A stretch of DNA of 64,000 bases from Botryllus schlosseri (Eukaryota). Where the stretch lies: contig CM119373.1 in NCBI GenBank assembly GCA_051294905.1, positions 26,288,001-26,352,000 on the forward strand, written 5' to 3'. Of this stretch, positions 1 to 56,296 are shown in pieces (positions within the stretch are counted from its first letter, which is position 1; every line of letters starts with the position of its first letter). Below the pieces are notes generated by a model. That model had not been told where the DNA came from. It made no database searches and saw only the letters and a program-made list of their open reading frames with translations. The translations under genes were made by a program, and so were the position numbers.

Positions 1-3000
1 AAATACTCCCTTACCGTTTCGAACTTCAATTCATTTCTCAGGAACTTGCTCATCTGAGCAGAAACAACAGCAGCATTCAACTCCAAACGCGGGATAGATA
101 CCTGTCGCTTCAGAGGGGCAACTCTGGCCTTGCCGATTACCAACGAAACATGGGCATTTCCTCTTTCGTTGACCAAGCGTACGTAAGAGCATTGACCATA
201 AGCATACGAGCTGCTGTCCGAAAAATGATGATATTCAACAAGCACGATCTTACCAAAACTCGGCGGCTTGAAACAGCGGTCAATGCGCAAAGACTCGATC
301 GATGATAACGTTGAACACCACGCAACCCATCGGCGCTTCAGCTCGTCTGGTACTTCATCATCCCAGTCCGTCCCAGCTTTGCAAAGAGATTGCAGAATGA
401 GTTTCCCTTCCAGCACCACTGGCGATATGAAACCCAACGGATCATATACGGAGTTGACAAAGGATAAGATGGAACGCCTGTTCACCGCACGATCGGACAA
501 TTTGATGTTGAATCTGAAACAATCATTCTTAACATCCCAAATTAGCCCCAATGTTCGAGTGCTAGGCACGATATCATCACATAGGTTTATTTCGCGATAC
601 CCAGTCGCTCTATCTTCCGTTGGAATAGAATTCATTATACCTCTGCACTATTGGAAACGAATTTGCAAAGTCGCAACTTGAAACTAGCGCACAGTGCTTT
701 GCTGCTTTTAACCAAACTCACGATTTCTTCAACAGAGTCCTTCGACGTAATACCGTCATCCATGTAGAAGTCGTCGCGTATAAAATTAGCCGAGTCGGGA
801 CCAAACTGACCTTCTCCGTCATCAGCCGCCCGCTTCAATCCAAAGTTCGCACAGCCTGGTGAACTTTTTGCTCCAAACAAATGAACCTTCATCCGGTATT
901 CCACCAGAGGTCCATTCCTGATGTCGTGATCTTGGAACCATAGGAATCTTAGAAAATCACGATACTGCTGTGATACAATAAACTGATGGAACATGGCTTC
1001 TATATCTGTGCACAACGCCACGTGTCCTTTCCGAAACCTGCAAAGAACTCCCAGCATCTCATTCAGCAGTATTGGGCCAGATAACAAAACATCATTCAGG
1101 GAAATTGAGCAATATGGAGCAGAACAATCGAACACGACTCTGATTTTATCCGGTTTATGCGGGTGGTAAACTCCCAAGTGTGGTATGTAATTCACTTTGC
1201 CATTTTCGATATTTCGGTCAGTTTCTGGTACCACCTCAGCCCAATTGTTAATGACATTTTCCATGAAGGTCACATAGTCTGTGGAATACTTCTCATCTTT
1301 CAGAAGGCGCTTTCTAAGTTGACCGATTCGCTTTACTGCTAGCGGCTTGTTATTTGGTAACGTTGCCGTACTGCTTTTCAAGGGTAAAGGCATTTCCAAA
1401 TGACCATCGCATCTTGGAAATGTGCCTTATTTGAGAATTTCGACGAACCTACGGTCTTCTATTGACATTGGAATATGCTTACCATTGTGTTCCGCAAATT
1501 CAATCTCAAACATGGTTCCTACTGATTGAGGTGTTAATACTTCTTTACATTTCGAACCGAACACAAGCTTGTCATCTAGGGCCGTAGGTCGAATTAACGT
1601 TTTGTGACAAATGACGGAATCCTTAGCAACGTCCAGACACATTGGACCTACAACTCCCCAACCTAATATGGTACGCACGCCATATGGTTCATTGTCCCCT
1701 CCAGCCACGACGTCTCTCGGCCGCAATGCTTTCGGTACATCTGTGCCTAGCAATACTGAAACATCCAACTTAGAGTCGTACGGGACAAGCTGATCACATA
1801 CCTCAGTGAGATGTGCCCACTCCTTGCAGACTTTACGGTTGGGAATCTGGGTGCGACAGACTGGAATCTCCTTTTCCGTGAAAAGTGTCGCCACATCAAC
1901 TCTTTCTTTCTTGTCATAGCTCAAGATCTCCAAACCCTTGACTTTCTTGCAAGGCGTGTTGATGTCTCTCCCGGCAAGAGTTGTCAACGATATCGCTGTA
2001 TCCGTTCCATCTAGGTCAAGCTTATCAAACAGTTCGTCTGAGATAAAACTGGAGTTGGAATGGTCGTCAAGGACGCAATAACAAAGTACTTCACATCTCG
2101 CATTATGTTTTGATCTAACCCAAACAGGTACAATGAGCGCGCTGCTTATTCCTCTACCATTTGAATCGCATATCTGCGTACATAGAGAAGTTGAGTTACT
2201 AACTTCCTTTTCATGATCTGTGTCAAGATGAAGGCATGTAGGATGCCTTTTGTCACATTTGGAACATTTTGCTCGCTTGGTACAGGATCTTGAAATGTGA
2301 GTTTTACCAGTTTTGTTGCCACAGCCGAAACACAGATAAAGAGCATAAAATACCTTTTTACGCTCCGCCATGGGTTTACCTTGCAATTTAGTGCAGTCAG
2401 CAATATGATGATCTCCTTCACAATGCAAACAACTTGCCTCCTCTACCTTGAACGCGAAAGAAGTTGTTTTCGGTTTCGGTTAGCTCTTGATGTTTCCACT
2501 GTCTTGCACTTCAAATTCAGGCTGATTCTTGATATCGGATTGGTCCTTAACAAATCTGACAATGTTAACAAATGGCGGGTAACTGTCGTCGAGTTAACCG
2601 CTTGTATTTGTGAACTTCATCCATCCACCGGTTCTTCAAATACAGTGGTAGTTTGTTGACCACAGCCGGTATTTGACAAGACGCATAGTCGAGCGTTTTC
2701 AAGTCCGTATTTCGCTCCTTGTTAGCTGAAACTTGCAACAGGAAATCAGAAAATTCACGAAGGTCATGCTTACTTTTGACGGGCTTCCACGCTTTCAGCT
2801 CATTGATGAAGGCGCTTCCAATCGACGTGCTACCACCGTATCTGAGCTTCAGCTCTCTCTTTGCAGCGAAGCACGATTCCTCGGTATTATTTAGGAAGTA
2901 ACCATCGACAACCTTCAAGGGACCGTCACCTAAATATTGCCGTAACAAATTCATTTTTTCGTTAGTATTTTGAACTCTGGACTCTACCAACGCCTCAAAC

Positions 3001-4614
3001 GATGCTTCCCATTTCGGAAAATCCAAAGGGTTACCAGTAAACTTCCACAGTCGAATGCTTGGAAGTCTTTGAGCTGATATCATCTCCCTCATCATTGACA
3101 GAAGTAACTCCTCGTTGCGTTGGAGACCATCGAGAGTACCGCGAGCATTTGAGTTCGATGCTGTGATATTTGGAGCTACGCCGGATCTACTCACGGGATC
3201 ACGCGGTATCTGCATGTGCATTACCTGCAAACATTGGTACAAAGTTATCGGAATAGACGTTAAGCCTATTAGTTCCTGGTGGTGCAGACGGTGCTTGAGC
3301 GATGTGTCCTGCGATGGTATTGATTGAATGTTCGGCGCGTGAATAATCAGCCACGCGAGATTCATTGACCACCACACGAGTACTAAATTGTGGTCGGTCA
3401 CGAACATCAACTGTATCTTTAACAGGATTCATCTCTGGACCTGTTGGGTGTTCGTCAACGGCGATGCCTTTTGTTTGATCGTGACGTGAAACAGCTGGTG
3501 GCTCCATGTAGGAAGACGGCTGACGCGAGAGATCCTCTAACTCTTCCATGAGACCGAATGGATTTTCCACTTTCTCCACTTGCCTGCACTCTCTTACGAT
3601 TGCTTCCTGCGTAGCTATCTGTTTCTTCGTTTCAAGAGCATCCCGCTCAAGCTTCATGGTGGTTTCATGCAACGCCCTCTTCTTCTCAAGCTCGGATTCT
3701 TCTTGTTTGAAAGCTAAACCCGCTTTAAGCACGGCCGCCTTTTCCTTGGCGTCGCGCATCTTTTGAATATGAGATTTGACACTCCCGGCCTTCGACGATC
3801 TTCCGGATGACTTGGTACGACTCGATCGACTAGAACACGAGCGTTTATCGGCTCTTATTTCGCGAAGACGTTGTGACACTTGTACCTTCGTTTCTTTTAT
3901 TCCAGCTTCCAGACGTTGAAATTCTTCTTCAAATAGGACATACTCGACGTCTGGAAGAACATCTTTCACTACTTCCAGAATACTTCTCAAGCTGTCCCTG
4001 TGTTGAAGCACCAGTTTCAAGGAACCCCCTACTTCACTTTCATCACTCGAGATTATTGCGATCTCGGAGCATTTTTCCATTCTCCGGCTCAAATGTTCAG
4101 TACTTTCTGAATATCTTGCCTTTATTTCTTTTGTCTTGCTGCGCGTCGCCACCTGCCGCTTTTTCACTACATCAGACGGTCCTTCACCGTCATGTTCGTG
4201 GTCATTGCGGTCGTTGCGCGGTACATTAGCATCATCGGTGGACGTTGCGCCCACGTGCGCGGTTCCACGGGCTTTGTCGGCGTCATCAGCGGACGTTGCA
4301 TCGACATGCGCGGGGCAATGGGCTACATCGGATGCCTTTGCATCAGCGGACGTTACATCCACATGTGCGGGGCGATGGGCTTCATCGGATGCCTTTGCAT
4401 CAGCGGACGTTACATCCACATGCGTGGTTCCATGAGATTTATCGGCGTCATCAGCGGACGTTTCACCCACAAGCGCTGTTCTATGGACTTGATCAGAAGC
4501 CTTTGCACCAGCGGACTTTGCATCCACATGCACGGTTCCATGGGCGTCATCGGATGCCTTAACATCATGAGTACCCATCTCGTGATTGGCTGGCGTGTTT
4601 TCTTTCGAAGCCAT
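1..4614 (-). pseudogene. BEL/Pao gag-pol polyprotein pseudogene
   Basis: Track ORFs 3199-4614, 2565-3410, 1427-2428 and 635-1399 join into one polyprotein via frameshifts near 3200, 2575 and 635 and in-frame TAA stops near 2480 and 1427; the frame below 635 is open to position 1. Confidence 0.9.
4227..4563 (-). repeat. Coding tandem repeat in Gag N-terminus, six units of 57/57/51/57/57/51 bp
   Basis: CA(T/C)C(A/G)G(C/T)GGAC anchor recurs at 4233, 4284, 4341, 4398, 4449 and 4506; protein units such as DAKASDEAHRPAHVDVTSA (19 aa) and DDADKSHGTTHVDVTSA (17 aa). Confidence 0.9.
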
Positions 4615-30410: not shown

Positions 30411-30788
30411 ATGGAGATACTTCACCTGCGTCCTTCGGATATACGCTTCATTAGAAATACCATCTCTCCGAGATTCAGCGATGGCGGCCACGTTAACACG
30501 GTCGCAAACGAGCTTATGAGTGGCTTACTGGACGAAGAGTAGCCTACATTACCACGATGGAGGTGTTTTGGGATGACCAGGATCACATCTACTACACGCG
30601 AGACAACCGCATGCTGTATGTATACCGGATGGCTGAATATCGAAGACGTATCGAGGCATGCAAGTGTTTGTCGACCGGAAACGTCCAGGTGACTACGAAA
30701 AGATCACCACGAAAAATAACGGGACTACCGTACGCCTTCGGAACGGCGCCAGAACACTTGAGCATTGTGACTGCGAAAAAGGGAATCG
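30411..30788 (+). pseudogene. ParB/sulfiredoxin-like exon, copy A (disabled)
   Basis: MEILHLRPSDIRFIRNTISPRFSDGGHVNTVANELMSGLL...TMEVFWDDQDHIYYTRDNRMLYVYR...KITTKNNGTTVRLRNG is colinear with 45220-45593; net +5 nt at ~30540 (creates TAG) and -1 nt at ~30656; ends CG|GTGAAT. Confidence 0.85.
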
Positions 30789-34337: not shown

Positions 34338-34568
34338 ATCTAGTACAATATCGGTGTAATAATAGATCCGAGCTGGAATCGATTTGAGATCGTGTCCAAA
34401 TCCAAGCTCGTGTCTGGCATAGCTACCTAAATTCACTTGAAAGTTAATGCAATTAGTGCACGACGTAGTTACCACCCTGGCTGGGGACTCCAATTCATGA
34501 CACGAAAGAGACTATCCATTAAAAATAGGCTGCGCCCTGTCAATAGCTTTACCAAATAATTTCTTAAG

Positions 34569-35200
34569 GGAATTTGACAAAGATGGACAGCGATGGTCGC
34601 CCTCGCGTATGTGGACGTCCTTACACCTCTGAGTGGACAGCATCATTTTCTCCATTCTCGAAATCTCGATCGATACGGAGTTCGAGATCACAAACAACGA
34701 GATATTTGTGTTGACTATGTTTTCGAAGTATACAATGACTCCATAACAATCTACAGTGACGGCTCGCTCCAAGTTTCACGACTGCGCGGGCATAGCAGTA
34801 TTTATCCCTGATGATGATCATGAAACTATTATTAAGTGGCGTTTCTCAAATCAACTATCCAGTATCTCACTGGAGCTGCCGGAAATATTATCGGGCTTGA
34901 GGTGGATAGTGCAGTACGGAAAGTCTTCAAAATATGATATTCTTTAGAATTGCCTGACTGGCCTTCAGCTTATCGGTCACTCGAGCTAAGAACCGCATTC
35001 ACGGCAAGGCACAATCCTGGGTGACATAATTTCGTTACAGCAACAAGCAAGCAAAATCGGTGTAGGCTTCCATTTCGTCTGGATAAAAGGGCATGTCGGA
35101 ATTCAACGAAAGGAAATTGCTGACGTGTCCACGAAAGAGACGGCGAACGATGATTCGTCTGCTTGGTTCCCGATCTGGCCACACGAGTGTTGTTACCAGA
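34569..35200 (+). pseudogene. LINE-derived RNase H exon, copy A (disabled)
   Basis: Acceptor TTTCTTAAG|G; colinear with 49420-50008 (YSDGS, GIAVFIPDD, SLELPEI, FVWIKGHVGI, EIADVSTKE, FPIW); stops at 34630-34632, 34945-34947 and ~34987, plus frameshifts. Confidence 0.85.
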
Positions 35201-36212
35201 GTACTACCAACAGCTTTGAAACAATGAATAAACCCGTGGCCAAAAGGGTCCCGCTACAATCAGTTCCAAAAACAAATTTTGCCAGCTTGCCTGAAACAAA
35301 CAACCGTCAGTATGACGCATTTTACAGTCCACGGTCTATTCTATACAATCCATACGTTTTTGGAAATCTTTTCTCTATATTAGTGGTTCATGAATTTGGG
35401 TCAGTGGACCCGTTTAGGGTTCGCGGATTAGATTACATACCACACCAAATTCGTTGGATAATCTCTCTAACGGTTAATAAGTAAATGATCCATGAGCGAA
35501 ATGGTAGAATCTTCGATAGTAATCAGCAGATTCGGGAAACTGTGGATTTAGCATAATTATTAGGCAGTTTCCTGTCGACATCGACATGATTCTAACTAAC
35601 AGATTAAGTCTCTTTCTTGAACGTTTTGTTCTCGGTTAGATATGTTTTCATGATAGATGGAAAATCGAAGCCCCTTATGGTTAGGTAGTGAAGGCTATGA
35701 GCCAGAAGTGTGAGTAGCCCTTTGAAATCATTATTATATTTAATATTTTGACCTGTAAATGTGGAAACCCAAGCCCCCCCCCATTTGAGGAGTCCAAGAT
35801 TTAGCGCATATATGAACAAAATAAGAAGAATATACCTTGGTAGATTTATTTAACTGAAACGAATTTGTAATCGCGTGCGTCCCACGAAACGAGTTTTTTA
35901 GGGGACGATTGTCTTATTCTATCATTATCTAGTAATCAACTTTCCAAATATGCTCGTGAGTATGTCTGTGCGATGGTGCTGAATTTTTATTTTCAGTAAT
36001 CAGCTTACCAAATTTAGAGGTGGGTCACAAATTTGATCCTCGCACGAAAAAAATCACATGTTAAATATAGGAATAGAATTGTTGTTGTACTTGGTAGAAA
36101 GTAAGCATACCCTTATAGAAATTATGGTTTACATAGACACCATGCGAAAAGAGAAATGCATCATGCAATCGTGGAAAGTGTCGAGTTATAATCTTGCGGC
36201 TGCCGGATTACT

Positions 36213-38098
36213 CTTATTATTATTATTACAAACATGAGTGGTGCTTTTCGCCATTTATGGTCTTGTGCGCCACGGTCGTCAGGAAATTCAAATCAAGCAG
36301 TAACTAAATGAACTTATTACAACTTATCACGAACTCAGCGATGGCTGTGGACAATTGCGATGACGAGAGTATAGGTTGCGTATGGTGAACGGTATATGTA
36401 ACTGATTGCAATAGGTAATAAAAATGATCGATGAAAGTCGTATTTAATGCACGATATCAAAATGTGTTCGACTGTTTCGATGACATCGCATTCTTCGCAC
36501 ATCGGAGAGTCCGAGCAGCCGATTCTGAATAAATGGGATGCTACTCCACAGTGTCCTGACCGTAGTCGAAATATCAGGCGTTCGATATAGCGACTGCCGT
36601 TTTTCTCCGGTCCTGTGGTGAGTGTGCTGTGGAATTGCTTGTAGTGGGATTCCCGTTCATCGGCAGAGTATTCGCATTGCCAGATCTCTTGGGTAACTCT
36701 TTTCATTGCGGCTTTGGCGTCTGGCACGGTAATAATTGGAGTTTGGCTCGATTGATCTTGCGTTGACGAGCCTACTCGGGCTAATTCGTCTGCTTTTTCG
36801 TTACCTGGAATTCCTGCGTGTCCCGGAACCCAAAAAAATTCAACAGCGATACCGGTATCATGGATATGTTTAAATATTTCCAATATGGATACAATCACGT
36901 TATTTGATGGTCGGTTCAGAGGTCTATAAACCGTCGTTAATGCGGATAGGCAATCTGAGAAGATGACGTAAGTGTGGTTTCGCGTGCCGTGGTCGAGTAT
37001 CCAAAATAATGCATGTTGAATCGGCTTCAATTCCATTGTAAAGGCTGATGATATCGGTGAGCAGGTACGAGAGATTGCGATATCATGTACCGGAATATAT
37101 ACCCCGTAACCAGCGCGATTGGATTTTTGGAACCGTCTGTGTAGATTGCCACACTGCCCCCATATCGTTCAAACATGAAATCTAGGCATATCGATTTGAT
37201 GTTTTCCAGTATTTCGCATTCCGAAGTGTATTTAAGTAGATCCAGGTCTGCGACGGGAATCGGTATTGTCCATGGTGGTGTGGTTAACCACTGTTGTGTC
37301 CCAACTGTCACGCGAGTATATGCGATCGTGAAATGATGTTAAAAGCTTTAAAATTCGGTTTTGTGATGCAATATATTTCATGCCACGAGTCTTCTACTAC
37401 GTTAAGACAAGGATGTCGAGGCGGTTGTTGTCCAAGTAATTGGCATCGGTAATTCGTGCTTAGATACTTGTGTCGTATGTCTAAGGGCATTTCGCCGCAC
37501 GCTGCTTGCAATACCCAGGCGGGTGTGCTACGCATAGCTCAACAGCAGATCCGTAGCGCAGCGTTTTGTATCGTCTGGAGCCGCTGTAGGTGACATTTAG
37601 GAGCGAAATAATACGCGGGAAGTGCATAGTCAATAAGTGACCGGATAAACGTTCTGTACACGATCAGTAGAGTTTCTGATATGGTATATCTGTGAGGAGG
37701 AGGAGCACATTCAATCTCCTGCAGCATTTAGCACTTATTTCCTCAATATGATATTTATACGATAGATTGTTGTCAAATATAACCCTGAGAAATTTGAACT
37801 TTTCGGACACTACGACTGGTGTGTTATCAATCCGTAACGCAAGTTCCGGGAGCGAGCGCTTCTTAGTGAATTACATTGCTACGCTTTTGGATTTCGATAG
37901 TATGAAGCCCCATTGTAAACATTAGCGCTAGATTGCATCCAAGGACATTTGTACCTCTGAAATTAGCGATGTTACGTTGAGACCACTTTGCCATAAGACA
38001 CAATCATCCACGAAAAGAGAATTCTCTCAACGTATTACCGAGGTTAAGTCGTTGATCATCACTCTGAAGAGTAGAGGCGACGTGTTTGGACCCTGAGT
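36213..38098 (-). mobile_element. 5'-truncated I-group (I/Nimb-like) LINE: RT end, RNase H, CCHC, (TAA)n tail
   Basis: SPLLFRVMINDL and LFVDDCVLW (RT), YRTFIRSLIDYA, LQTIQNAALRIC, PPWTIP, IYTDGSK, IFSDCLSAL, WVPGHAGIPGNEKADELAR, CEECDVIETVEHILISC; TTATTATTATTATT tail at ~36213; several frameshifts. Confidence 0.92.
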
Positions 38099-38941
38099 TG
38101 AGTTATAAAAAAAAATTGTGTATTTCTGAAGATTGGTGTTCGTACAACTTAATTTCGATATCACGAGACTTCTAGCGCTCTGCACCAGGGGATTTCCCTG
38201 GTAGCCTACGGCTCTGACTATGGCTATGAAGTATTGCTTGTTATTCCAGTTGAAATTGAGGGTTTTGATCGATTTTAGCAGCCTTGTTATTGTTTAAATT
38301 GATATTATTATATTTGGAAGCAAGTTTAGCGACGCATATCAGAAGAATGGTTTGTTGCGTCATGACTGCGTACAGCAGCTGTGCGAATCAAGACATTCAG
38401 CAGAGGTAATATATTACCAATAATTAATATGTGGTACGGCGAAGGATAGTTCGAAGTCAAGTACGGCAGCTCTCAACTGGCACCTATCATTAGCGTACAT
38501 GCCATACTCATGAGAACGTATTTCGCAGCTTCTTTAAGTACGCGGCACAGTTAGGGGAATCGCAGCACCCTATCTTGTTACGGTGACAATTTACACGACA
38601 GTGTCCTGTCTGTAAGCTTAGAAGTGTTTTTCGCAGGGTGCGAGGCAGTTATAGGGAAAAGTCCTGTATAGTTATCTTGGCAGCGACGGTTTCTTGGTAA
38701 CGTTGGGGGCAGATTTCCCAGTAAAGTCTTGAAGTCGGGGAGTTGACTTCGTTAGACTATGTTCTACACTTTGATCATTAAATTCATAGGGCGGCTCCTC
38801 CTACGCGAGTAGGTCGGCGACTGAATCATCATGTATGTCAGAGTGTGATGGAATCCATATAAATGAAATGACTGTATTACTATCGTGCAAGAGAAGGTGG
38901 CTCACTTCCAGTAGGCTATTTAACTGAATATTATATTAATC

Positions 38942-42789: not shown

Positions 42790-45219
42790 GGCAGCTATGG
42801 TTGATCGACAGGCAGATAAAAGTGAGAAAGAGATAGTAATTTTTGATAATTGTTACACAAACACATTTATGGTGTAGTTGGTAGCTACTGTATCGCTGCA
42901 ATCGATAACAAATACGATAACCGCAAAATCGAGCGGTGTTCGATTGAGATTATATGAAAAACGATATCATTTTATAAATTATTGACGATTGTATTCACTT
43001 TGCTTCCTTGAATTTCAGCCCAGCGCCTACTCGGAGACAATATACCCATTGTAACGATTTAATGGGGCTACGTCATAAGAGAACAGATTTTTTTTGGAAA
43101 TTGCGACTATAATATCTTATTGCGTCACCATATCGATCACGATTTGTCGGCTTCACAACCATTTGTCCTTCTAGCTACGACCTATGCTTACGTGATCTAT
43201 AAAGTGGGTAACGGAAGACGGATTGAAATCTGGATGAACCAATGCTGAAATAAAGATGTTGCCATGCACCTTCAAGTACCGCCATCAAAGATAAGACAAA
43301 ATCATTTTTCTGATTCAAACTTTTTGTCAGCAGGTTTTTAGCCAAAGGTATATTTTTCAGCCGCTACGTAACAAAAGGTCAATGACTGTAGCCAGCAATG
43401 GTATTCGGTTCGCTAATCTGAAAACATTTCGCGAGACGGTTCGATACAACTCGTGCGAACCTGCTAAAACTTACCAGTGTACAAAATGAACACGCAATTC
43501 TGTCAATACACTTGTACCTGCATTCCACATAATAGGCCTACGGATATTGTGAGCCGCCGTCACGAACATCTCGAAAGAACTGCTCGTTTAAATTGGCGAC
43601 TTACGTCATCCTTATGATATTTTATTTGAATACAAAATTTTCAAAATTTTGGAAAGCATATCGTACGTCTCTTCTTTGGTGCTTCATGCCCCCACGGAAT
43701 ACATGCACCGATAGTACAAAAACTGCAGTAGACCGAAATAACTGCTCCCAAGAGTAACGTCTGAGGTCGCTACCTGATAATATACGATAGCCGCTAGTTG
43801 CTATGACATTGCATATTTACGGTGGTCGATCTCGACTTTAGTACACACTAAATACTATTACGCACGAACAAGAAGGAAACTGGTGTAACTTAAATATGAA
43901 TTTAAAGGGTCGATTTGCAGATGCTCTGTACTTTTCCCGCTGTTTGATAGTCGGTACAATGTGTTGCATTTAGCTACTGCAGAGATGAAAACAGCGGAAA
44001 GAATAAGAACTGGCGTCGATTATTATTATCACCAACGCCTGTTTCCGCTACACGACAGTAGGCTATCGGTTATCGAAAGGAAATCACATATGCAGGTCAC
44101 ACATTCGAAATTAGATTACAGGCTGTGTCTGTATGTTAGCTTCTACGTCGCCATTCGGTTTTTCCCTAGTGGGGATCCAAATCCAGGCATCACATTGTAC
44201 ATTGTGTGTATTGAGCGTATGTCTGGTTGGCACAGTAGTGTATTTTCGCAGGGAATTTCGTTGAATATTTCTTTACATTCGGAATAGACCGATTTGATGG
44301 CTCTCACGGTGACAGGTTATGAGATTGGGTTGCCGGAATGTTATTTACATATTACGTGGTACAGTTGTTGAGTAAAGGACGCTCCTTTGCAATGTGTCTT
44401 GTAATTTTCGACAATTCTGCGCCCACTCACCAACTCACTGCGCAGACCTTGAGACAACAGGGCGTAACGACTAAAAATGGTCATCACTTCGGATTTTTTG
44501 TGCGCAACTTATATTTTCTGTTCGCAGAGACCGTGTCAGCACTGCACATTTGCGCACGTCCGCAGCTTAGAGAGAACATTGCAGTCCTGTGTGTTAGGGC
44601 CAGTATCCCACTCAATCATCGCGGTTCAGCAGTTTCTGTAAGGATCGTCACCCCCTAGTACCTACACCTAGATTTCGCTTATGTTGTAATATTACATACC
44701 GTGGTTGTGTCATGTGCTCCTAGTCATTTGCATGTAAAGAATGGACATGTTGAAATCACTCGTATTCGATATAAGATTGAGTTGAGAAATTCAGACACTA
44801 TACGCGTTATTTAACATTGTCATCTTCTGAAGATTCGCGCTATTGCAAATTTTTGCGTTATCCCGCCACACTATAGCGGATTTCGCTGGTAGCGTATAGG
44901 TACGCATCAACCGAATGGCGATGACGTATTGCGTTTACTCCAATGCAACACCGTGGACGAAGTATTGCTTGTTACTCAGGTTGAAGATGTGACTGACTTA
45001 CATTGAAATAGACAGGGCCTAGGCCTGATACGTTGATGGTCAGTTTGATGAGGACGAGATGCGACCTAGAATATCAGTGAGGCGTACCGTCGGTGGATTT
45101 TGAAAGCTCTGCTTCTACTCGTTCTTGAAGAGTTATTGCGTCACCACTTCTATTTCTACATGAGTAGCTTTCTTGATTACAGACATTATTCCCTACTAGT
45201 AGCCTAATTATATGTTAAC

Positions 45220-45593
45220 ATGAAGCTACGTAACCTGTGTCCATCGGCTATACGCTTCTCCCAAGATACAATCTCTTCGACATTCCGCGGCGGCGAGCAC
45301 GTAACCACGGTTGCAAACGACCTGCTGTGTGGCCTCCTTTGCGTAGAGGACTTTTCCACGATGGAGGTGTTTCGGGATGAACGGGATCGCAACTATTACA
45401 CGCGAAACAACCGCATGTTGCATGTTTTCCGGGAGGCCGAATGCCAAGGATGTATCGTCAGCATTCCAGTGTTTGAGGACCGGAAACGCCCAAGCGATAA
45501 CAAAAAGTTCACCACGAAAAACAACGGAACTACCGTACGCGTCCGCAATGGCGCTATAAAGCTGTATCATTTCGACTACAACAAGAGGTATTG
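45220..45593 (+). CDS. ParB/sulfiredoxin-like domain; predicted exon 1 of a ParB-like-RNase H fusion (125 aa if unspliced, stop at 45595-45597)
   Basis: Intact ORF with PSAIRFSQDTISSTF, MEVF, YYTRNNRMLHVF and KFTTKNNGTTVRVR motifs of a ParB/Srx-like family; ends TG|GTGAAT, a donor-like site conserved in copy A. Confidence 0.78.
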
Positions 45594-45679
45594 GTGAATT
45601 ACATGAGTTGAAGTTCAACATAGTATTAGTGATCGAATCATTACCATATATCTAAATAATATAAAGGCCCAGGTGGCTG

Positions 45680-45785
45680 ACTGATCTCAAAGACTACTCC
45701 AAGCCGCCTCGGCACCTTCCGCATTGTATCGAAGTCTTGTGATGTTTTAAAATGGTGTAATTTAATGAATAAACTTGTACTTGAA
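45680..45785 (+). mobile_element. L2-like LINE/SINE 3' terminus
   Basis: Reverse-complement similarity to 6160-6255 (GATC...AAGACTACTCCAAG...CATTGTATCG.AGTCTTGTGATGTTTT), ending in AATAAAC. Confidence 0.6.
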
Positions 45786-45801
45786 CTTGATTCGTGCCCA
45801 T

Positions 45802-46387
45802 TAGGGTTGTTGAAAAATGTAGTTTTTCCCGGATCCCGGGTATTCTCTGATTAAACTGTTAGCTTGCCTAAAAAGACTGCAAACCAAATTTGGCTTAATT
45901 CCAAACAGCAGAATCCACCGCAGAGCCATTTTTTTTTAATTTATTCGAAAAAAATGACTAATAATTTTCAAATTTTACTGTCCGCCCCATGAAATTGTAA
46001 AGTTGTCTTTAAAAACGATACAAAAGAAATTTGTCGCAATTCCAACCCGTAGATGCGACGTTATTTAAGTTTTTCATCAATTATTCTGAGATTACCCACC
46101 AACGATGCTATTTTTGCAAATCCAAAACTTTCAACTGCAATAACGTCGCTTTTACCGGTTTGAAGTGAGAAAAAATAGCATCGTTCTTTTAGGCAACATA
46201 ACAATTTCATGGATTGACAGTAACATATCATATTTGTTTAATTTTAAAAATAAACTTAAAATTTCGATTGGCTCTGCGGCGGTTTGCACTTGTTGGAATT
46301 GTGCCAAATTTGGTTTGCAGCGTTTTTTAAGCAACATTACAATTGCATAAGTGAATTCCCGGAATCCTAATTTTTTTAACAACCCTA
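45802..46387. mobile_element. hAT-type MITE
   Basis: TIRs TAGGGTTGTT.AAAAA / TTTTTAACAACCCTA, TSD GTGCCCAT/ATGCTCAT (6/8). Confidence 0.75.
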
Positions 46388-48447
46388 ATGCTCATGCACA
46401 CCAAGTTAGATCAAAGCGACTAAAACCTGTCTCGCCAAATTAGTCTTTCGAATCGAATCGTGAATTTCGCAGATGTGGTCGCTAACGAAGTTCTTCTACT
46501 TTCGCCGCGTACTCAGGTAGTTGTAGGTTATGTACACTATTCTTGCTCGTGTAGTTATACTTTTGGGCTATACTTCTAACTTTTTAAAGTTTTTTTTTTT
46601 AGTCAAATCCACATACTTTTTATGGTTTAGCGTTTGATATGTTCCCGTCGATTTTACGACTGAAATTTTCGTATAGATCGGGCATGACCGGACAATATAT
46701 TATGTGGAACACGATAACTGAATATATTTTCGAAAATTCGACCTGCTAGTGGTGTCATTAGTTGCATTTATAATTTTTATTGAATTATCAGGGTATGAGA
46801 TACTCTAAAGGTTCCGTTGTTTAACCTAATTCCTGCAGAGCTGTCAAATTTGTTACTTTACCATTTAACGGCATTTATTCACGGCACACAGCAAGACAAT
46901 TACACAATGCGATAATAACTTCACAGCCAAACAGCATAGCGATAGCCCCGCCCTACCCCTAAAACAAGTAAAATAACACGCCCCTAACCCCCTAGATTTT
47001 CAAACGTCACCCAATGCATTACAGAAAAACTCACTCTCGGCGACTTTAACAGAATCAATAGCCTGAAAAAGGTGACCAAATAAAAATGTAACTTTAGGCG
47101 GTCTCGCCTGAGCGTTCTCAAATTTAAACGACGGAATTAATAAATCGATCTATTTACATATTGCTCTGGCACGGTGGTGCTTGGCAGGGGTAGTTTAACT
47201 TGGTGCTTGGAAGCCATTGTGTCATAGATAACAGTGACATGCAGCTAACACATCAGATAGCTTTTTGTTATGCCAATTAAAGTGAATAGAATCATACCAG
47301 AAATCGTTTATAGCATATTTTTGAATCACTTCTTTACGTTTTTACGCAATATTTGATAAAATTTGCAGTAAAAATTGGCATGATAAATAAAGAAATGTTG
47401 CAAAAAGTTGCACTATAAAATCCCTCCAAACATCATAAAACATCATAGTTCATAGATTCTGAGTATCTAGGAAGCTGTTGGAAGCTGTAAAAAAGTTGCA
47501 AAAGTTGCAAAAACGTTCCCTAGTCATTATCGATATTGTGCATCAGTCTTGGAGCTGCAATGCCTTACTAAAACATAGTCAAGTCAGACTAACTCCTAAA
47601 TGTATCGGTGACCTTGACCATACATCTACCCTTTTCCACCACATACTTAACTACTTTTCAGACGGATAAATTCTATCTATACTTGAAGTATTTTTTCCCG
47701 ATACTTCTACTCGTAATTGAGTGAAAATTGTCGACAGTTCTTCTCCGAGAGAACGAGGTGTGATTACTTCGACTCACTCTGTAATGTCGAATACGGATTC
47801 CGGTGATACGAATGCCGATTCGGATAAACCACGGTGCGATTAAACTAAATTGCTGTCCGACTCATCATCAAGTGACATCAATCAACAATGCGTTGGGTAT
47901 TTAATGATGTCGTTCGATGAGATGTGTCTTATATAGACCCCTTGCAGCAGCTAGCGCAAAACCCGATCGAATTATATATCGGTCGGTAACGTTACATTAT
48001 TTTCGATTACCTGGATGGATTCAATCTGTATCAATGCATAAATGTTGACTTGGGCTCAAACTTCGAATGGCCAAGGTTCCCTTTTACTCATCCCTAATTA
48101 TAGGATTCTGATTTGAAAATGTCTGCTGGACTTCAACTTCCAAATTTTGCGGATCGGTTTGGTCGCAAAAACATCCTACGAAACTGTCATTCCATGAGAT
48201 GTATATGAGTGTTTATTTACGCTATTACCATGCGTGGGTGCAACCCATTCGGACATGATTTGTAACATTCAGGGTAAGATCGGTGTAATTATAGATCCAA
48301 ATCCGAACCCGAAATTGATTTGAGATCCAAATCCAAGCCCATGTCTTGTCTAGTATAGCGACTTAAAGTCATTAAAAGTCAATTTAATGAGTATATGACC
48401 TGGTTCTCACTCAGTGTCGGAGTCATGGTACGAAATAGCCGATATAC

Positions 48448-49361
48448 CAGGGGTGGGCAGATCTGCTTCATGCGCGTGCCACAACACGAAAATGCAAGAA
48501 TGCGAGTGTATTACGTCACAATAAAATGTAGGCTATCGAATGGAGTTTATTATTGTGTGTTGATACCTGGGCTGCAAGGTGTTTGAAATCAGGCTGATAT
48601 GACTCGAAAGCAGCGCGGAGCAGTTCCTTCAAGTGCTGATGAGCATTTAGGGAAGATTTCAGCTCAGTAATCTTATTACTCCGTAAATCTGTGTTCGTTG
48701 GGTAACTTGTGTTCATTGGGTAACTCGCGAAAACGTTTTGGTGTTTGGTTTCGTAATGACGTTTCAAGTTACTAGACTTGAAATTATTGAGAGAATCTTG
48801 ACAGATAAGGCACATTAGCTTACCCCCATTATCACTGAATGCAGACTGTTCCTCCCATTCTCTTTTAAAAGTTCTATTTTCCTGTTCATGTTTTCTTTTC
48901 TTGTAAATGTCGCTGAACGACATTTCCCTGCAGTTATTGCTAGCCTTTACAATACAAATGAAAGAGCATTATTCGCCATTGTTTGCCCGGAATTGTTTGT
49001 GTCCTGCGCTACCATAATGAATTATTATCAAGTTCATTGTTGATTACGATGATTTTTCGTTGACTGATGAGTGACGGCTATGCACAATTGTTGTGGGTGA
49101 AACGTTTATGTGAATTCGATACGAGAATTCAATCACAAAGTTCTAACCATATAGTGCAACCGTCGACTAAATTTTACAAGTGTTATGTCAGCCATAAGGA
49201 GAGAAACAACACCCAAGCGATACGCATATTGTTATACGTAATAGAATGCATCAATTTATAATCATGTTGAACGTTTCTAGCAAAATAGCGAAAGACATGT
49301 GTAGTAGTGTACATTGTACATGTACAATCTTTTAAAGAGCCGCAGTTTGCCCACCCCTAAG
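48448..49361 (-). mobile_element. Internally deleted hAT (GTF2IRD2/SPIN-like) element, ORF 48516-48923
   Basis: Termini CAGGGGTGGGCA / TTGCCCACCCCT, perfect TSD CGATATAC; ORF has N-terminal KRKHEQENRTFKREWEE...CLIC...NLKRHYETKH joined in frame to the C-terminal LRAAFESYQPDFKHL. Confidence 0.9.
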
Positions 49362-49419
49362 CGATATACTGTACAATAGGCTATTTTCTCTTAATACCTC
49401 CGTCCAATACTTTTTTCAG

Positions 49420-50008
49420 GGATCTCAGCAACGATAGCTACCAATACCCAGTCTTTGCAGCGTGGATGGGCCCTCCCCTCCAAGTGGACTGCAGCCTTGA
49501 ACACATCTCCCGCCGACGACGAGATATTTTTCAGGATTATGTTTTGGACATACACGATCGTTCCAAAGCAATCTACACTGACGGCTCCAGGCTCTCATAC
49601 GGCACTGGCATAGCAATGTACGTCCCTGACGACGGAATTATTATCAACCAGCGATGCTCGGATCCATTCAAATCCAGCAGCGATCTAGAACTGCTGGCCA
49701 AAAAATTGGCCTTGAAGTATATAGTGGAGCACGGTGATGCCTGCAATTACACTATTCTTTCGGATTGCCTGAGTTGCGTTAAGGTTATCGGTAACTCTAG
49801 GCCGCAATCGCGTCAACACAAAATCCTGCGTGATATATTTTCGTTACTTGATCGAGCCAGCAACCTCGGCGTGAGTATCAAATTCGTCTGGATACCAGGG
49901 CATGCGGGAATTGCGGGAAATGTAATTGCAGACAAATATGCAAAAGAGGCGGCAAGCGATGAATCGTTTGGTCCGGACCCGATCTGGACCATCGAGTATG
50001 AAAACTAG
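49420..50008 (+). CDS. RNase H domain (I-group LINE type); predicted exon 2 of the ParB-like-RNase H fusion
   Basis: Acceptor CAATACTTTTTTCAG|G; 195 open codons; D (YTDGS), E (DLELLA), D (ILSDCLS), H (WIPGHAG) and D (GNVIADK) all retained; splice phase matches 45593. Confidence 0.75.
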
Positions 50009-50800
50009 AGCGATGCAGAAAACTTTGGAACGATGAATACCAACCGTGTAAGCGGTGTCTTATAAAAGCCTAGAAGTGGGCCGTGCTACAAGTCGGCATC
50101 TACGGAATAAAAATGAAGAAAATTGACCTGGAGTAAATTATTATAGTAGTCAACGTACAACATGAATACCACAAACAACGACAACAACGATGAATACACT
50201 CGTGGCCAAAAAGTATTACAAGCATTTCTGAAAAGCAAATTTTTGCCCGGAGGCCTGAAACGAACAGCCGTCATTATGACGCATATAATTATGTCTCCGG
50301 TCAGGTCACTGAAGTTCAAGCAACGACTCACTTGGTATTCCTCGTTTGTTTCTTGGACACTCTATCCCACTTACTGATCAGATGCCGGGAATTTGAGTAT
50401 CATCTCCGCTAATTTGGTGTAAATAAAACGCTGCTTTCTTTCTCAAAAATATATCTTTGAACTCTACATCGTTTAACTATACCCCAAAGAACTCATACTT
50501 TCCAGTGAACTGTACTTCTATATAAGTAGTTCGTAAATGAGAGTCCGTAGACCCGTCAGAAGTTGGTGGATTAGTTTGAAGTTGTCCGCTAGGGGAAAAT
50601 CATAGGGAATAGGCTACAGAGCCGAGTAATTGGACCGCGCGGCAAATTCGTTGAAATATTCGATAGATCGGCTCGGAAGTAAATGATCCTCGCGCGAAAT
50701 AGTAGGATCTTCGATACGAACCAGCAGATTTTTGAGTCTGCAAATCTGTGGAATTAGCGTACTCAATATGCATTTTCCTGTCATCATCAATATGATTCTG
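50009..50800 (+). pseudogene. Decayed LINE ORF2 tail downstream of the RNase H exon
   Basis: Out-of-frame remnants RKLWNDEY (~50020-50040), KKYYKHF, CLRSGH* (50292-50312) match QEIWQCEY, SHYKQFH and RLRSGHC of the LINE at 36335-37036; homologous decayed tract at ~35200-35600. Confidence 0.65.
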
Positions 50801-51240
50801 ACTAATTCAGTCCCTTTCCTTAGCGTTTATTTTCCAGGTGGATAGTGTTAAATGATGTATTTAAATTTAAAGCCTCATATGGTTGGACAAATGGACATGG
50901 CCACTGAGGGCTGTAAGCCAAAAGTGTCAGCAGCCTCTGGGGATTATTATGATTGTTAATATTTTAACCAGTGTATGTTGGTATTCAGGGCGTAGCAGTG
51001 GCACTACAAACTCCCTTCCTGAGAGCAGTCCCAAACGTAGCTCATAAATGAAAATAAGTAGAATATTCGTGGGCAAATTTATCTAACTGAAAGGAAAGTG
51101 TATTGTCGCTTCCGACAGGAGTTTTTTGGAGGAGTTAGTTTTTTTTCTAGCAATCAGCATTCCGGGTGGGTTTGTGAGCAGGTCTGGGCGACGGTGCTGA
51201 ACTTGTTTTCAAGAATCAGCATACCAAATTTAGAAGTGGG

Positions 51241-51377
51241 TCACAAATCAGAAATTGTGCCACGACCATGAAAAGGTTGGGTTGGATCAGGAGTCACCAA
51301 CACGTGAAGTGCGTCACAAATCAGAAATTGTGCCACGACCATGAAAAGGTTGGGTTGGATCAGGAGTCACCAACACG
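51241..51377. repeat. ~73-bp tandem duplication spanning a MITE insertion junction
   Basis: TCACAAATCAGAAATTGTGCCACGACCATGAAAAGGTTGGGTTGGATCAGGAGTCACCAACACG occurs twice identically (51241, 51314). Confidence 0.95.
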
Positions 51378-55504: not shown

Positions 55505-56213
55505 CAGGGGTCGCCAAGTCAAAACGGGTTGCGGGCCAATTTTCTAAGTTAGTAGTGGCTGCGGACCACATGAATTCAATATCGATATAAAATAGGCAAC
55601 CACGTTTTTAACTCTACGTCTGTACAACTCTAATCGATATTGGGGCTAACGAGGTACGATACTAGCTCAAAGACTATATCCACGTAATGCTCGATCTTGT
55701 GTGGAAGCCGTGAGCCAGTGGTTCTCAAACTTTTTTAGACACGCCCCCCTTTATGATACTGAAAATTTCCTCGCCCCCTCATCGTTATTTAGAAGCATGC
55801 AACCAGAATGCAAGCAATCCCAACAGATAGTTTGAGGGCATGGAAGCTTATGACAGTAGCTCCGCAGCCCTTTCAGATGCTTCCACGCCTCCGCATGGGG
55901 CACCCTCAGTTTCAGAACCAAAGTCTCGGTCTTGGCAAGGTTTGGACCATTGCACGTTCAGGAAATATGCCCATTCATACCAGCTGATTCTCCCTCGATG
56001 GAATGCTGCCATCGCCAAAGCCGTTTTAGCTAGTGACTTATAATGATGTGAGCACAAGAGAATATAGCTTATTTTGAAACAACAACAACAATATGTTGAA
56101 ACTGTAGTTAATTTCAGCATTTCAAAAAGGTTTACTAAGCTTTCTTCCGAAAATTCAAATCAGGTCATCGGCCCCAAAATATGCCCTCGCGGGACGCGTG
56201 TTGCTGTACCCTG
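55505..56213 (-). mobile_element. hAT MITE, third copy of the CAACACGCGGCCCGC family
   Basis: Reverse-complement colinear with 51361-52185, including the nested Charlie-like piece; TSD not preserved. Confidence 0.8.
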
Positions 56214-56296
56214 AATTGGTAGATTAGTAGGTCTTTATTAATGTCGCATGCGGACCTGCATAATATAGGCCTACTTTTGTAAGATGCAAATAAATA

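Follow-up and report, generated by a model that had tools for sequence, protein, structure and literature searches.

A LINE-derived RNase H domain spliced to a Tox-ParBL1 exon in Botryllus schlosseri: frame retention and the case for domestication

Introduction

Can a host gene take up the RNase H domain of a long interspersed nuclear element (LINE) alone, leaving the reverse transcriptase (RT) behind? The question is raised by a stretch of 64,000 nucleotides of the Botryllus schlosseri genome (GenBank assembly GCA_051294905.1, contig CM119373.1, forward-strand positions 26,288,001 to 26,352,000), hereafter called the window, in which an open RNase H frame lies within the 3′ end of a decayed LINE. 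Positions are those of the window unless a chromosomal coordinate (C3) is given. The unit under study, which consists of this RNase H frame and of a small Tox-ParBL1 open reading frame (ORF) upstream of it, is designated copy B; copies A and C are its paralogues. A preliminary description of the DNA had interpreted the locus as a domestication, in which purifying selection preserves only the RNase H domain of an old LINE insertion. The analysis presented here establishes that the RNase H sequence is an exon spliced to the ParBL1 gene and that its frame has been maintained in two paralogues. We consider it probable, with some reserve, that a LINE 3′ end was joined to the ParBL1 gene by a new intron, that the frame was kept and the unit duplicated, and that the product is a functional protein.

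Host genes built from retroelement parts derive mostly from long terminal repeat (LTR) elements (gag, protease, integrase, and the RNase H plus integrase of NYNRIN) and from DNA transposases. To our knowledge, a LINE RNase H captured alone is not among the textbook cases, and literature searches returned no described capture of this kind.

The RNase H exon and its fold

In copy B a frame without interruption extends from 49361 to 50005 and is closed by a TAG codon at 50006-50008; positions 49421-50005, 195 codons, constitute the RNase H coding part. Read from the splice acceptor (cttttttcag|G), the exon encodes DLSNDSYQYPVFAAWMGPPLQVD...WIPGHAGIAGNVIADKYAK...EYEN*. The Pfam profile RNase_H (PF00075) matches residues 48-178 with E=3.6e-13 and 50.3 bits (curated cut-off 25.8), spanning profile positions 3-140 of 141. 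Copy A scores 58.9, and the scores of both copies exceed that of an intact LINE from the same genome (42.1). The complete catalytic set is present, namely D54 (in YTDGS), E90 (LELLA), D115 (LSDC), H161 (PGHAG) and D171 (IAD). When copies A and B are aligned with 19 LINE RNase H domains of this genome (21 sequences in all), copy B is found to hold all 24 invariant residues, including D54, D115, H161 and D171, the column of the catalytic E90 being near-invariant.

The AlphaFold2 (AF2) model of the copy B domain has the canonical RNase H topology, with a mean predicted local distance difference test (pLDDT) score of 83.5 and a predicted template modelling (pTM) score of 0.82. Its top Foldseek matches are gammaretroviral RNases H (XMRV, MoMLV) and those of HIV-1, human H1 and E. 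coli HI, with E values from 3e-8 to 6e-7, and a profile search with the domain matches human RNase H1 (2qk9). By profile, catalytic residues and predicted fold, the exon therefore qualifies as a type 1 RNase H, with cleavage of RNA:DNA hybrids as its putative activity.

LINE origin, truncation and decay of the tail

The LINE ancestry of the exon is apparent on both sides of its stop codon. A full-length reference element of the genome (L035:2626-6354:-) has an ORF2 of 1243 amino acids (aa) with the domains Exo_endo_phos, RVT_1 and RNase_H. Its residues 901-1093 align by tblastn to 49403-49966 with 48% identity, and residues 1136-1231 to 50230-50484 with 37%. These two matches lie in element order in copy B, while copy A matches residues 871-1243; over residues 901-1093, the RNase H exon is 48-51% identical to LINE ORF2. 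A tree was built from copies A and B, LINE RNase H domains of this genome and P0001, a 196-aa RNase H-only ORF found on a 1373-nt Logan contig, whose identity is 62% with copy A and 49% with copy B. In this tree the L003/L006 LINE family forms the sister group of (P0001,(A,B)), with support of 93/91, and the clade falls within the LINE RNase H diversity of the genome. By homology over linker, domain and tail, and by tree placement, the RNase H exon is derived from a LINE ORF2, as the preliminary description had proposed; its assignment of the donor to the I group is tentative.

That description had also placed the acceptor just upstream of the RNase H linker, so that no RT would be included. 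The second part stands, since tblastn revealed no RT remnants upstream of RNase H in copy A or B and LINE homology begins at 49403 in copy B. The position needs correction: LINE sequence extends ~17 nt 5′ of the acceptor in copy B and ~90 nt farther in copy A, and the acceptor is thus located within the LINE, not at its edge. At this site the intact LINE reads tttttcacag|atctc.

Past the RNase H stop, the LINE tail of copy B is frame-shifted and interrupted by stops, and its zinc-knuckle Cys/His ligands are gone. Remnants are recognizable in shifted frames as LWNDEY (~50023), YYKHF (~50213) and CLRSGH* (~50293). At least six stops are found in the tail of copy A, and at least two stops plus frameshifts and an insertion in that of copy B. 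The tail also contains an AATAAA at 50422-50427, which is common to copy A and absent from the LINE. All motifs on which the preliminary description relied were recovered, namely WMGPPLQVD, WIPGHAGIAGNVIAD and the three tail remnants, as was the LINE at ~36.6 kb that served for comparison.

Two other repeats were noted. A 135-bp repeat is inserted in the LINE tail at 50041-50175; other places in the region match it at ~82%, and its depth of 2600-3900 in all runs marks it as a high-copy short repeat, possibly a short interspersed nuclear element (SINE) or a miniature inverted-repeat transposable element (MITE). The comparison LINE, in which the motif WVPGHAGIPGNEKAD is found, is the 3′ part of a minus-strand element at 36416-38140, directly downstream of copy C. 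It comprises an RT end, RNase H and a zf-RVT-like tail with frameshifts, is 39-45% identical to the reference ORF2, and is unrelated to the insertion studied here.

Splicing of the RNase H exon to the ParBL1 exon

Public sequencing runs were aligned to positions 44900-50600. In one of them (X1), a contig of depth 15 joins 45585 to 49418 (reported as 'GT..AG (cut +2)') and skips 3832 nt, which places the junction at 45587|49420. The contig is 97% identical to copy B and hence does not come from copy A. A search of the assembly that allowed up to 3 mismatches did not recover the junction sequence, and a retrocopy as the source of the joined contig was accordingly ruled out. Donor and acceptor are both of phase 2, so that an Arg codon is rebuilt and ParBL1 is read in frame into DLSND and the RNase H domain. 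The junction joins a 122-residue Tox-ParBL1 exon to the RNase H exon. X1 covers the RNase H exon as well as exon 1 (from 45181 on) and the tail as far as 50417, its depth falling to zero past 50438, an end that fits the AATAAA signal. The RNase H exon is further present in 16 runs from 7 studies other than the source, with a word share 3-4 times that of the locus as a whole, as coverage of exons only would predict; these runs are not recorded as RNA. The exonisation of a LINE RNase H onto a ParBL1 gene is thus real, and the exon use assumed in the preliminary description is borne out by the spliced GT..AG contig.

The acceptor AG|G is common to copies A, B and C. Copy A lacks the donor of copy B and has instead CG|GTGGGT 6 nt downstream, which preserves the phase. 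Its intron measures ~1.3 kb, and that of copy B is larger through transposon insertions. On the minus strand of the copy B intron lies an ORF (48516-48923, 135 aa) with a Spin-doc/BED-type zinc finger (PF18658 E=8e-8, PF02892 E=3e-3); it is absent from copy A and is probably a transposon-derived insertion. The features of copies B and C are collected in Table 1.

Table 1. Features of the fusion locus (copy B) and of its decayed paralogue (copy C) in the window
Feature	Position	Strand	Description
Exon 1, coding part (copy B)	45220..45587	+	ATG at 45220, 122 codons + 2 nt; Tox-ParBL1 (ParB/Srx-fold)
Intron (copy B)	45588..49419	+	3832 nt; donor AG|GTATTG (45587|45588), acceptor cttttttcag|G (49419|49420)
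LINE-derived linker with polypyrimidine tract and acceptor AG (copy B)	49403..49419	+	cttttttcag|G; from tblastn start and four-way DNA alignment
RNase H exon (copy B)	49420..50008	+	1 nt completes split Arg codon, then 195 codons + TAG
Subdivision of RNase H exon (copy B)	linker, residues 1-47; RNase H domain, residues 48-178	+	Pfam
Decayed C-terminal part of LINE ORF2 with the zinc-knuckle region, forming the present 3′ untranslated region (copy B)	50009..50515	+	tblastn to ORF2 residues 1136-1243
ParBL1 exon, pseudogene (copy C)	30411..30780	+	split over three frames
LINE 3′ fragment (copy C)	34434..35320	+	RNase H with 2 stops and a 4-nt insertion

Exon 1 and the Tox-ParBL1 family

The host partner of the fusion probably belongs to a family described by Zhang et al. 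2012 (PMC3482391), which its motifs fit in most positions. Tox-ParBL1 domains have a ParB fold with a conserved N-terminal Ser and a [NT][RT][RT] motif, and the family includes metazoan members. The AF2 model of exon 1 has a pLDDT of 92, and its top fold matches are ParB, Noc and sulfiredoxin. The N-terminal Ser occurs within IRFSQDTIS; N64 and R65 are invariant, and the third motif position, usually Arg, is Met (NRM) in copies A and B. Among its 544 homologues elsewhere are tunicate and annelid proteins as well as a bacterial RHS/PT-HINT toxin, whose C-terminal module corresponds to exon 1 (E=4.6e-8). An RNase H fusion is absent among the ParBL1 homologues examined, and Pfam detected no RNase H in ten longer ones. 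The C-terminal parts of the longer homologues are unmatched in the window and in the 32 kb upstream, many of them being tandem ParBL1 repeats.

In the genome, ~35 Tox-ParBL1-like ORFs are clustered in tandem at C3 26.08-27.3 Mb. They are mostly single-exon and 110-160 aa long, some contain stops, and three of them carry a LINE RNase H. The cluster appears to be a lineage-specific family in which genes are gained and lost, descended from bacterial polymorphic-toxin modules. The nearest family members without a LINE are single ORFs that end exactly where the unspliced frame of copy B does, three codons past the donor (RYW*, TGA at 45595-45597). An intron-retaining transcript would accordingly encode the ancestral 125-aa protein with ParBL1 only, and the locus may produce two isoforms. 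A hypervariable patch was also noted in exon 1 at 45305-45345 (residues ~29-42), where contigs of other individuals (runs X15 and X1) differ 7 times in 37 nt and loose read ends of run X20 resemble the copy A version. This variation suggests divergent alleles, gene conversion or an unassembled paralogue.

Three copies of one locus

Copy number was determined by a six-frame search of the whole 495-Mb genome. The closest relative of the copy B RNase H is copy A, with 65% identity, at C3:26268005-26268577, 69 kb upstream, where the open RNase H frame spans 233 codons. After copy A, the nearest relatives are LINE ORF2s of at most 51% identity, many of them full length. Copy C is 44% identical to the copy B RNase H and broken; one of its stops replaces the catalytic Ser-Asp and its 4-nt insertion falls in the TDGS motif.

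In all three copies, RNase H lies 1.3-4 kb downstream of an ORF of ~125 codons (45220-45597 in B, C3:26266306 in A, 30411-30780 in C). The loci are homologous in this ORF and in the LINE fragment, and also in parts of the spacer and in the flank past the LINE end; between B and C, for instance, 50643-51248 matches 35446-36032. Because the homology reaches into the flanks, A, B and C are duplicates of one locus with a single LINE insertion. The unit is accordingly immobile and of low copy number: three linked copies that arose by locus duplication, without RT or apurinic/apyrimidinic endonuclease (APE). A 72-bp direct tandem duplicate (51233-51304 and 51306-51377, 98.6% identity) has similar units at 56110-56214 and elsewhere in the window.

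Outside the genome, protein searches returned only P0001 and distant arthropod LINE fragments at no more than 39% identity. P0001 has the insertions specific to the A/B clade and ends at the same position as copy B, and the ~650 nt upstream of it are free of called genes. P0001 could represent an orthologue or a paralogue from another sample.

Frame retention and amino-acid constraint

Copies A and B were compared by block-wise alignments, a global MAFFT alignment of the 5.6-kb unit having misplaced exon 1. The RNase H exon (589 bp) is 80.8% identical, with gaps of 3, 3 and 6 nt in frame plus gaps of 4 and 2 nt at its very end, and exon 1 (368 bp) is 86.7% identical without gaps. The alignable non-coding DNA (1506 bp) has nearly the same identity, 80.9%, and 21 gaps, 17 of which are frameshifting; in the LINE tail alone (468 bp, 79.6%), all four gaps are. 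The coding parts of A and B have neither a stop nor a frameshift at 19% divergence. For the RNase H domain, 4.9-6.4 frameshifts would be expected and none is observed (P ~0.002-0.008). When neutral substitution was simulated to the observed divergence, both frames remained stop-free in 2.4-3.1% of trials. The chance of the coding parts of both copies keeping open frames is ~1e-4 or less. Maintenance of the open frame in A and B is therefore statistically well supported, and the contrast drawn in the preliminary description, between an RNase H kept open and a LINE remainder left to decay, is reproduced in two paralogues.

Two further observations concern the frame. The frame ends few codons past the domain in A, B and P0001 (...PEYDY in P0001, ...IEYEN in B), and this shared end indicates that the truncation just after the domain is old; copy A has a 4-nt indel at the end and is closed by a TGA that copy B also contains, though out of frame. 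In contigs of another individual (X15), 7/484 sites of the RNase H exon differ from the window, as against 11/320 in the 5′ flank and 22/619 in a contig covering 48843-49461, almost all intron. The lower number of differences in the exon is suggestive but comes from a single sample.

A rival explanation is neutral exonisation: splice signals that fitted by chance would have added a functionless RNase H to the ParBL1 transcript, the exon would be drifting under relaxed constraint, and copy B would be on its way to becoming a pseudogene like copy C. Much of the evidence that speaks against a functional fusion speaks for this explanation. In the comparison of A and B by codon-model maximum likelihood, omega (dN/dS) is 0.73 for the RNase H exon (likelihood-ratio p=0.20 against omega = 1), 0.67 for the Pfam core (p=0.16), 1.8 for the linker (p=0.28) and 1.09 for exon 1 (p=0.82). 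An uncorrected Nei-Gojobori omega of 0.60, at first sight a sign of constraint, lost significance once transition bias was modelled, and a calibrated simulation gave p=0.15 for an excess of synonymous change. Nucleotide divergence is the same in the exon (19.2%) and in the intron (19.1%). Polarised changes number 20 nonsynonymous and 13 synonymous in A, 37 and 16 in B, and the branch of B is about four-fold longer than that of A (0.41 versus 0.09). Five of the 12 near-invariant residues of the alignment are changed in B (K57R, I68V, I94K, W100Y, E168V), whereas copy A retains all 12. The I94K change lies in the buried helix after the catalytic Glu. It is the ELLAKKLAL deviation to which the preliminary description drew attention, and it is genuine, since LINEs read ELLAILSAL and copy A ELQAISSAL; like the other four changes, it is a caveat for RNase H activity. 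The death of copy C marks the unit as dispensable, and a transcript left unspliced would yield the ancestral 125-aa protein as before. Bulk RNA-seq gives low coverage: two subsamples (X20, X24) yielded few reads on the exon, all fitting in part only, which neither confirm nor refute expression. The junction itself was seen in one contig of one public run whose RNA nature is inferred, and searches of 5.8 billion proteins, with the single sequence and with a 3-sequence profile, gave no orthologous fusion protein, two further points that count against a functional fusion.

Neutral exonisation is nevertheless rather unlikely in our judgement. It must account for two exons free of stops and frameshifts in two copies at 19% divergence, for which the RNase H part alone gives P ~0.03 for stops and 0.002-0.008 for indels, and lower values with exon 1, while the adjoining LINE tail and copy C gathered many lesions. 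It must also account for the retention of all catalytic and invariant residues and for Pfam scores above that of the intact LINE. A different rival, in which the RNase H is no part of a gene and is a recent 5′-truncated copy of a rare LINE family, open only through its youth, is hardly credible. The genome does contain hundreds of RNase H-bearing LINE copies, and 5′-truncated 3′ ends are the commonest LINE remnant. However, no genomic copy exceeds 65% identity and the nearest LINE stands at 51%, so the exon does not come from a young LINE family; the many near-identical copies that would have signalled such a family were not found by the copy-number search that the preliminary description had called for. 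Moreover, the insertion predates two locus duplications now diverged by 19% and ~33%, the inserted fragment has a heavily decayed tail, and a spliced junction to the upstream exon was seen. A young LINE copy was consequently rejected on copy number and identity.

A third explanation modifies the functional fusion by invoking diversifying selection: a dN/dS near 1 would average over a constrained catalytic core and a positively selected surface or linker, a pattern to be expected if the gene served in conflict or immunity within a tandem family evolving by birth and death. In its favour are the higher omega of the linker relative to the core, neither value being significant, the A-like variants of the 45305-45345 patch in reads of other individuals, the ~35 clustered paralogues including pseudogenes, and the descent of the family from bacterial polymorphic-toxin modules (PMC3482391). 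On the other side, only two sequences are compared and the omega differences are not significant. We regard it as possible though doubtful, and as a refinement of the functional fusion rather than a true alternative.

Purifying selection on the amino-acid sequence of RNase H, the central claim of the preliminary description, is thus not demonstrable, dN/dS not being significantly below 1. If selection acts at all, it acts on an open frame in a fast-evolving two-exon gene. Of the two open copies, A has the better claim to be a functional fusion, and B is the faster-evolving one. As to domestication, exonisation, low copy number and the kept frame agree with the earlier proposal and the dN/dS values do not; with a non-significant dN/dS of ~0.7, a kept frame plus a genuine splice junction falls short of proof. 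Functional domestication is therefore plausible but unproven. The combination of an unbroken frame and an omega of ~0.7-1.1, in a clustered family of toxin ancestry with gain and loss of members, is compatible with a conflict gene that evolves fast as well as with an add-on under weak constraint.

A proposed history of the fusion

The functional fusion, which we prefer, implies a capture whose steps are legible in a single locus. A 5′-truncated LINE (ORF2 from ~870 to the end) would have inserted in sense orientation behind a small Tox-ParBL1 gene with a single exon, at a distance of ~1-4 kb. A donor AG|GT would then have arisen in the last codons of this gene, three codons before the old stop, and a pyrimidine-rich AG|G inside the LINE linker would have become the in-phase acceptor. 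The resulting mRNA would encode the ParBL1 domain, followed by 47 linker residues from the LINE and by the whole RNase H, with a frame that terminates few codons past the domain, so that the decaying LINE tail would serve as 3′ untranslated region with a new AATAAA as poly(A) signal. Two duplications of the unit would have followed, after which A and B kept both exons open and C decayed. The three paralogues would thus have met three fates, one conserved (A), one fast-evolving (B) and one dead (C).

We infer that retention of the frame reflects selection on a functional protein, in which the RNase H may bind or cut RNA:DNA hybrids and direct the ParBL1 module to such substrates. With a toxin-derived partner domain, the ParBL1-RNase H pair is a candidate nucleic-acid-directed defence protein, and the fast evolution of the gene pair (dN/dS ~0.7-1.1) resembles that of conflict or immune gene families. 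A more specific and, in our estimation, improbable scenario would make the fusion a lineage-specific effector: the LINE RNase H would recognize RNA:DNA hybrids (retrotransposition or viral intermediates, R-loops) and bring the ParBL1 catalytic module to them, thereby acting against retroelements or viruses. If true, part of a retroelement would have been turned against retroelements or viruses in a fast-evolving, tandem, immune-like family.

Comparison with known systems

Exon 1 shares with the Tox-ParBL1 family the ParB/Srx fold, the N-terminal Ser motif, the first two residues of the N-R-[R] motif and the homology to toxin modules, and departs from it in the Met at the third motif position of A and B and in the RNase H fusion. 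The RNase H exon resembles LINEs of the APE-RT-RNH type, such as the L035 element, in the homology of linker, domain and tail and in the same DEDD+H residues. Unlike these elements, the exon unit is devoid of APE, RT and zinc-knuckle tail, has a low copy number and is joined by splicing to a host exon; its identity to the nearest of them is only 51%.

As a combination, the gene belongs to the known class of host-transposable-element chimeric genes. In SETMAR and in the EKA effectors derived from LINE ORF1 (PMC4641428), a coding segment of a transposable element was likewise recruited to a host transcript while the remainder decayed; the recruited segments there are a transposase and a LINE ORF1, whereas here it is a LINE RNase H. 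Its closest analogue is the therian mammal gene NYNRIN (CGIN1), a fusion of a KHNYN duplicate with a Ty3/Gypsy RNase H-integrase segment (PMC9447858). The NYNRIN donor is an LTR element, its integrase is included and the gene is therian-wide; in B. schlosseri a non-LTR LINE served as donor, nothing but its RNase H was kept, and the fusion occurred by a new intron, is of lineage-specific age and has no known orthologues. Both genes nonetheless join a host gene, which in NYNRIN carries a nuclease-type domain, to a retroelement pol fragment with RNase H, in a chimera that leaves reverse transcriptase out.

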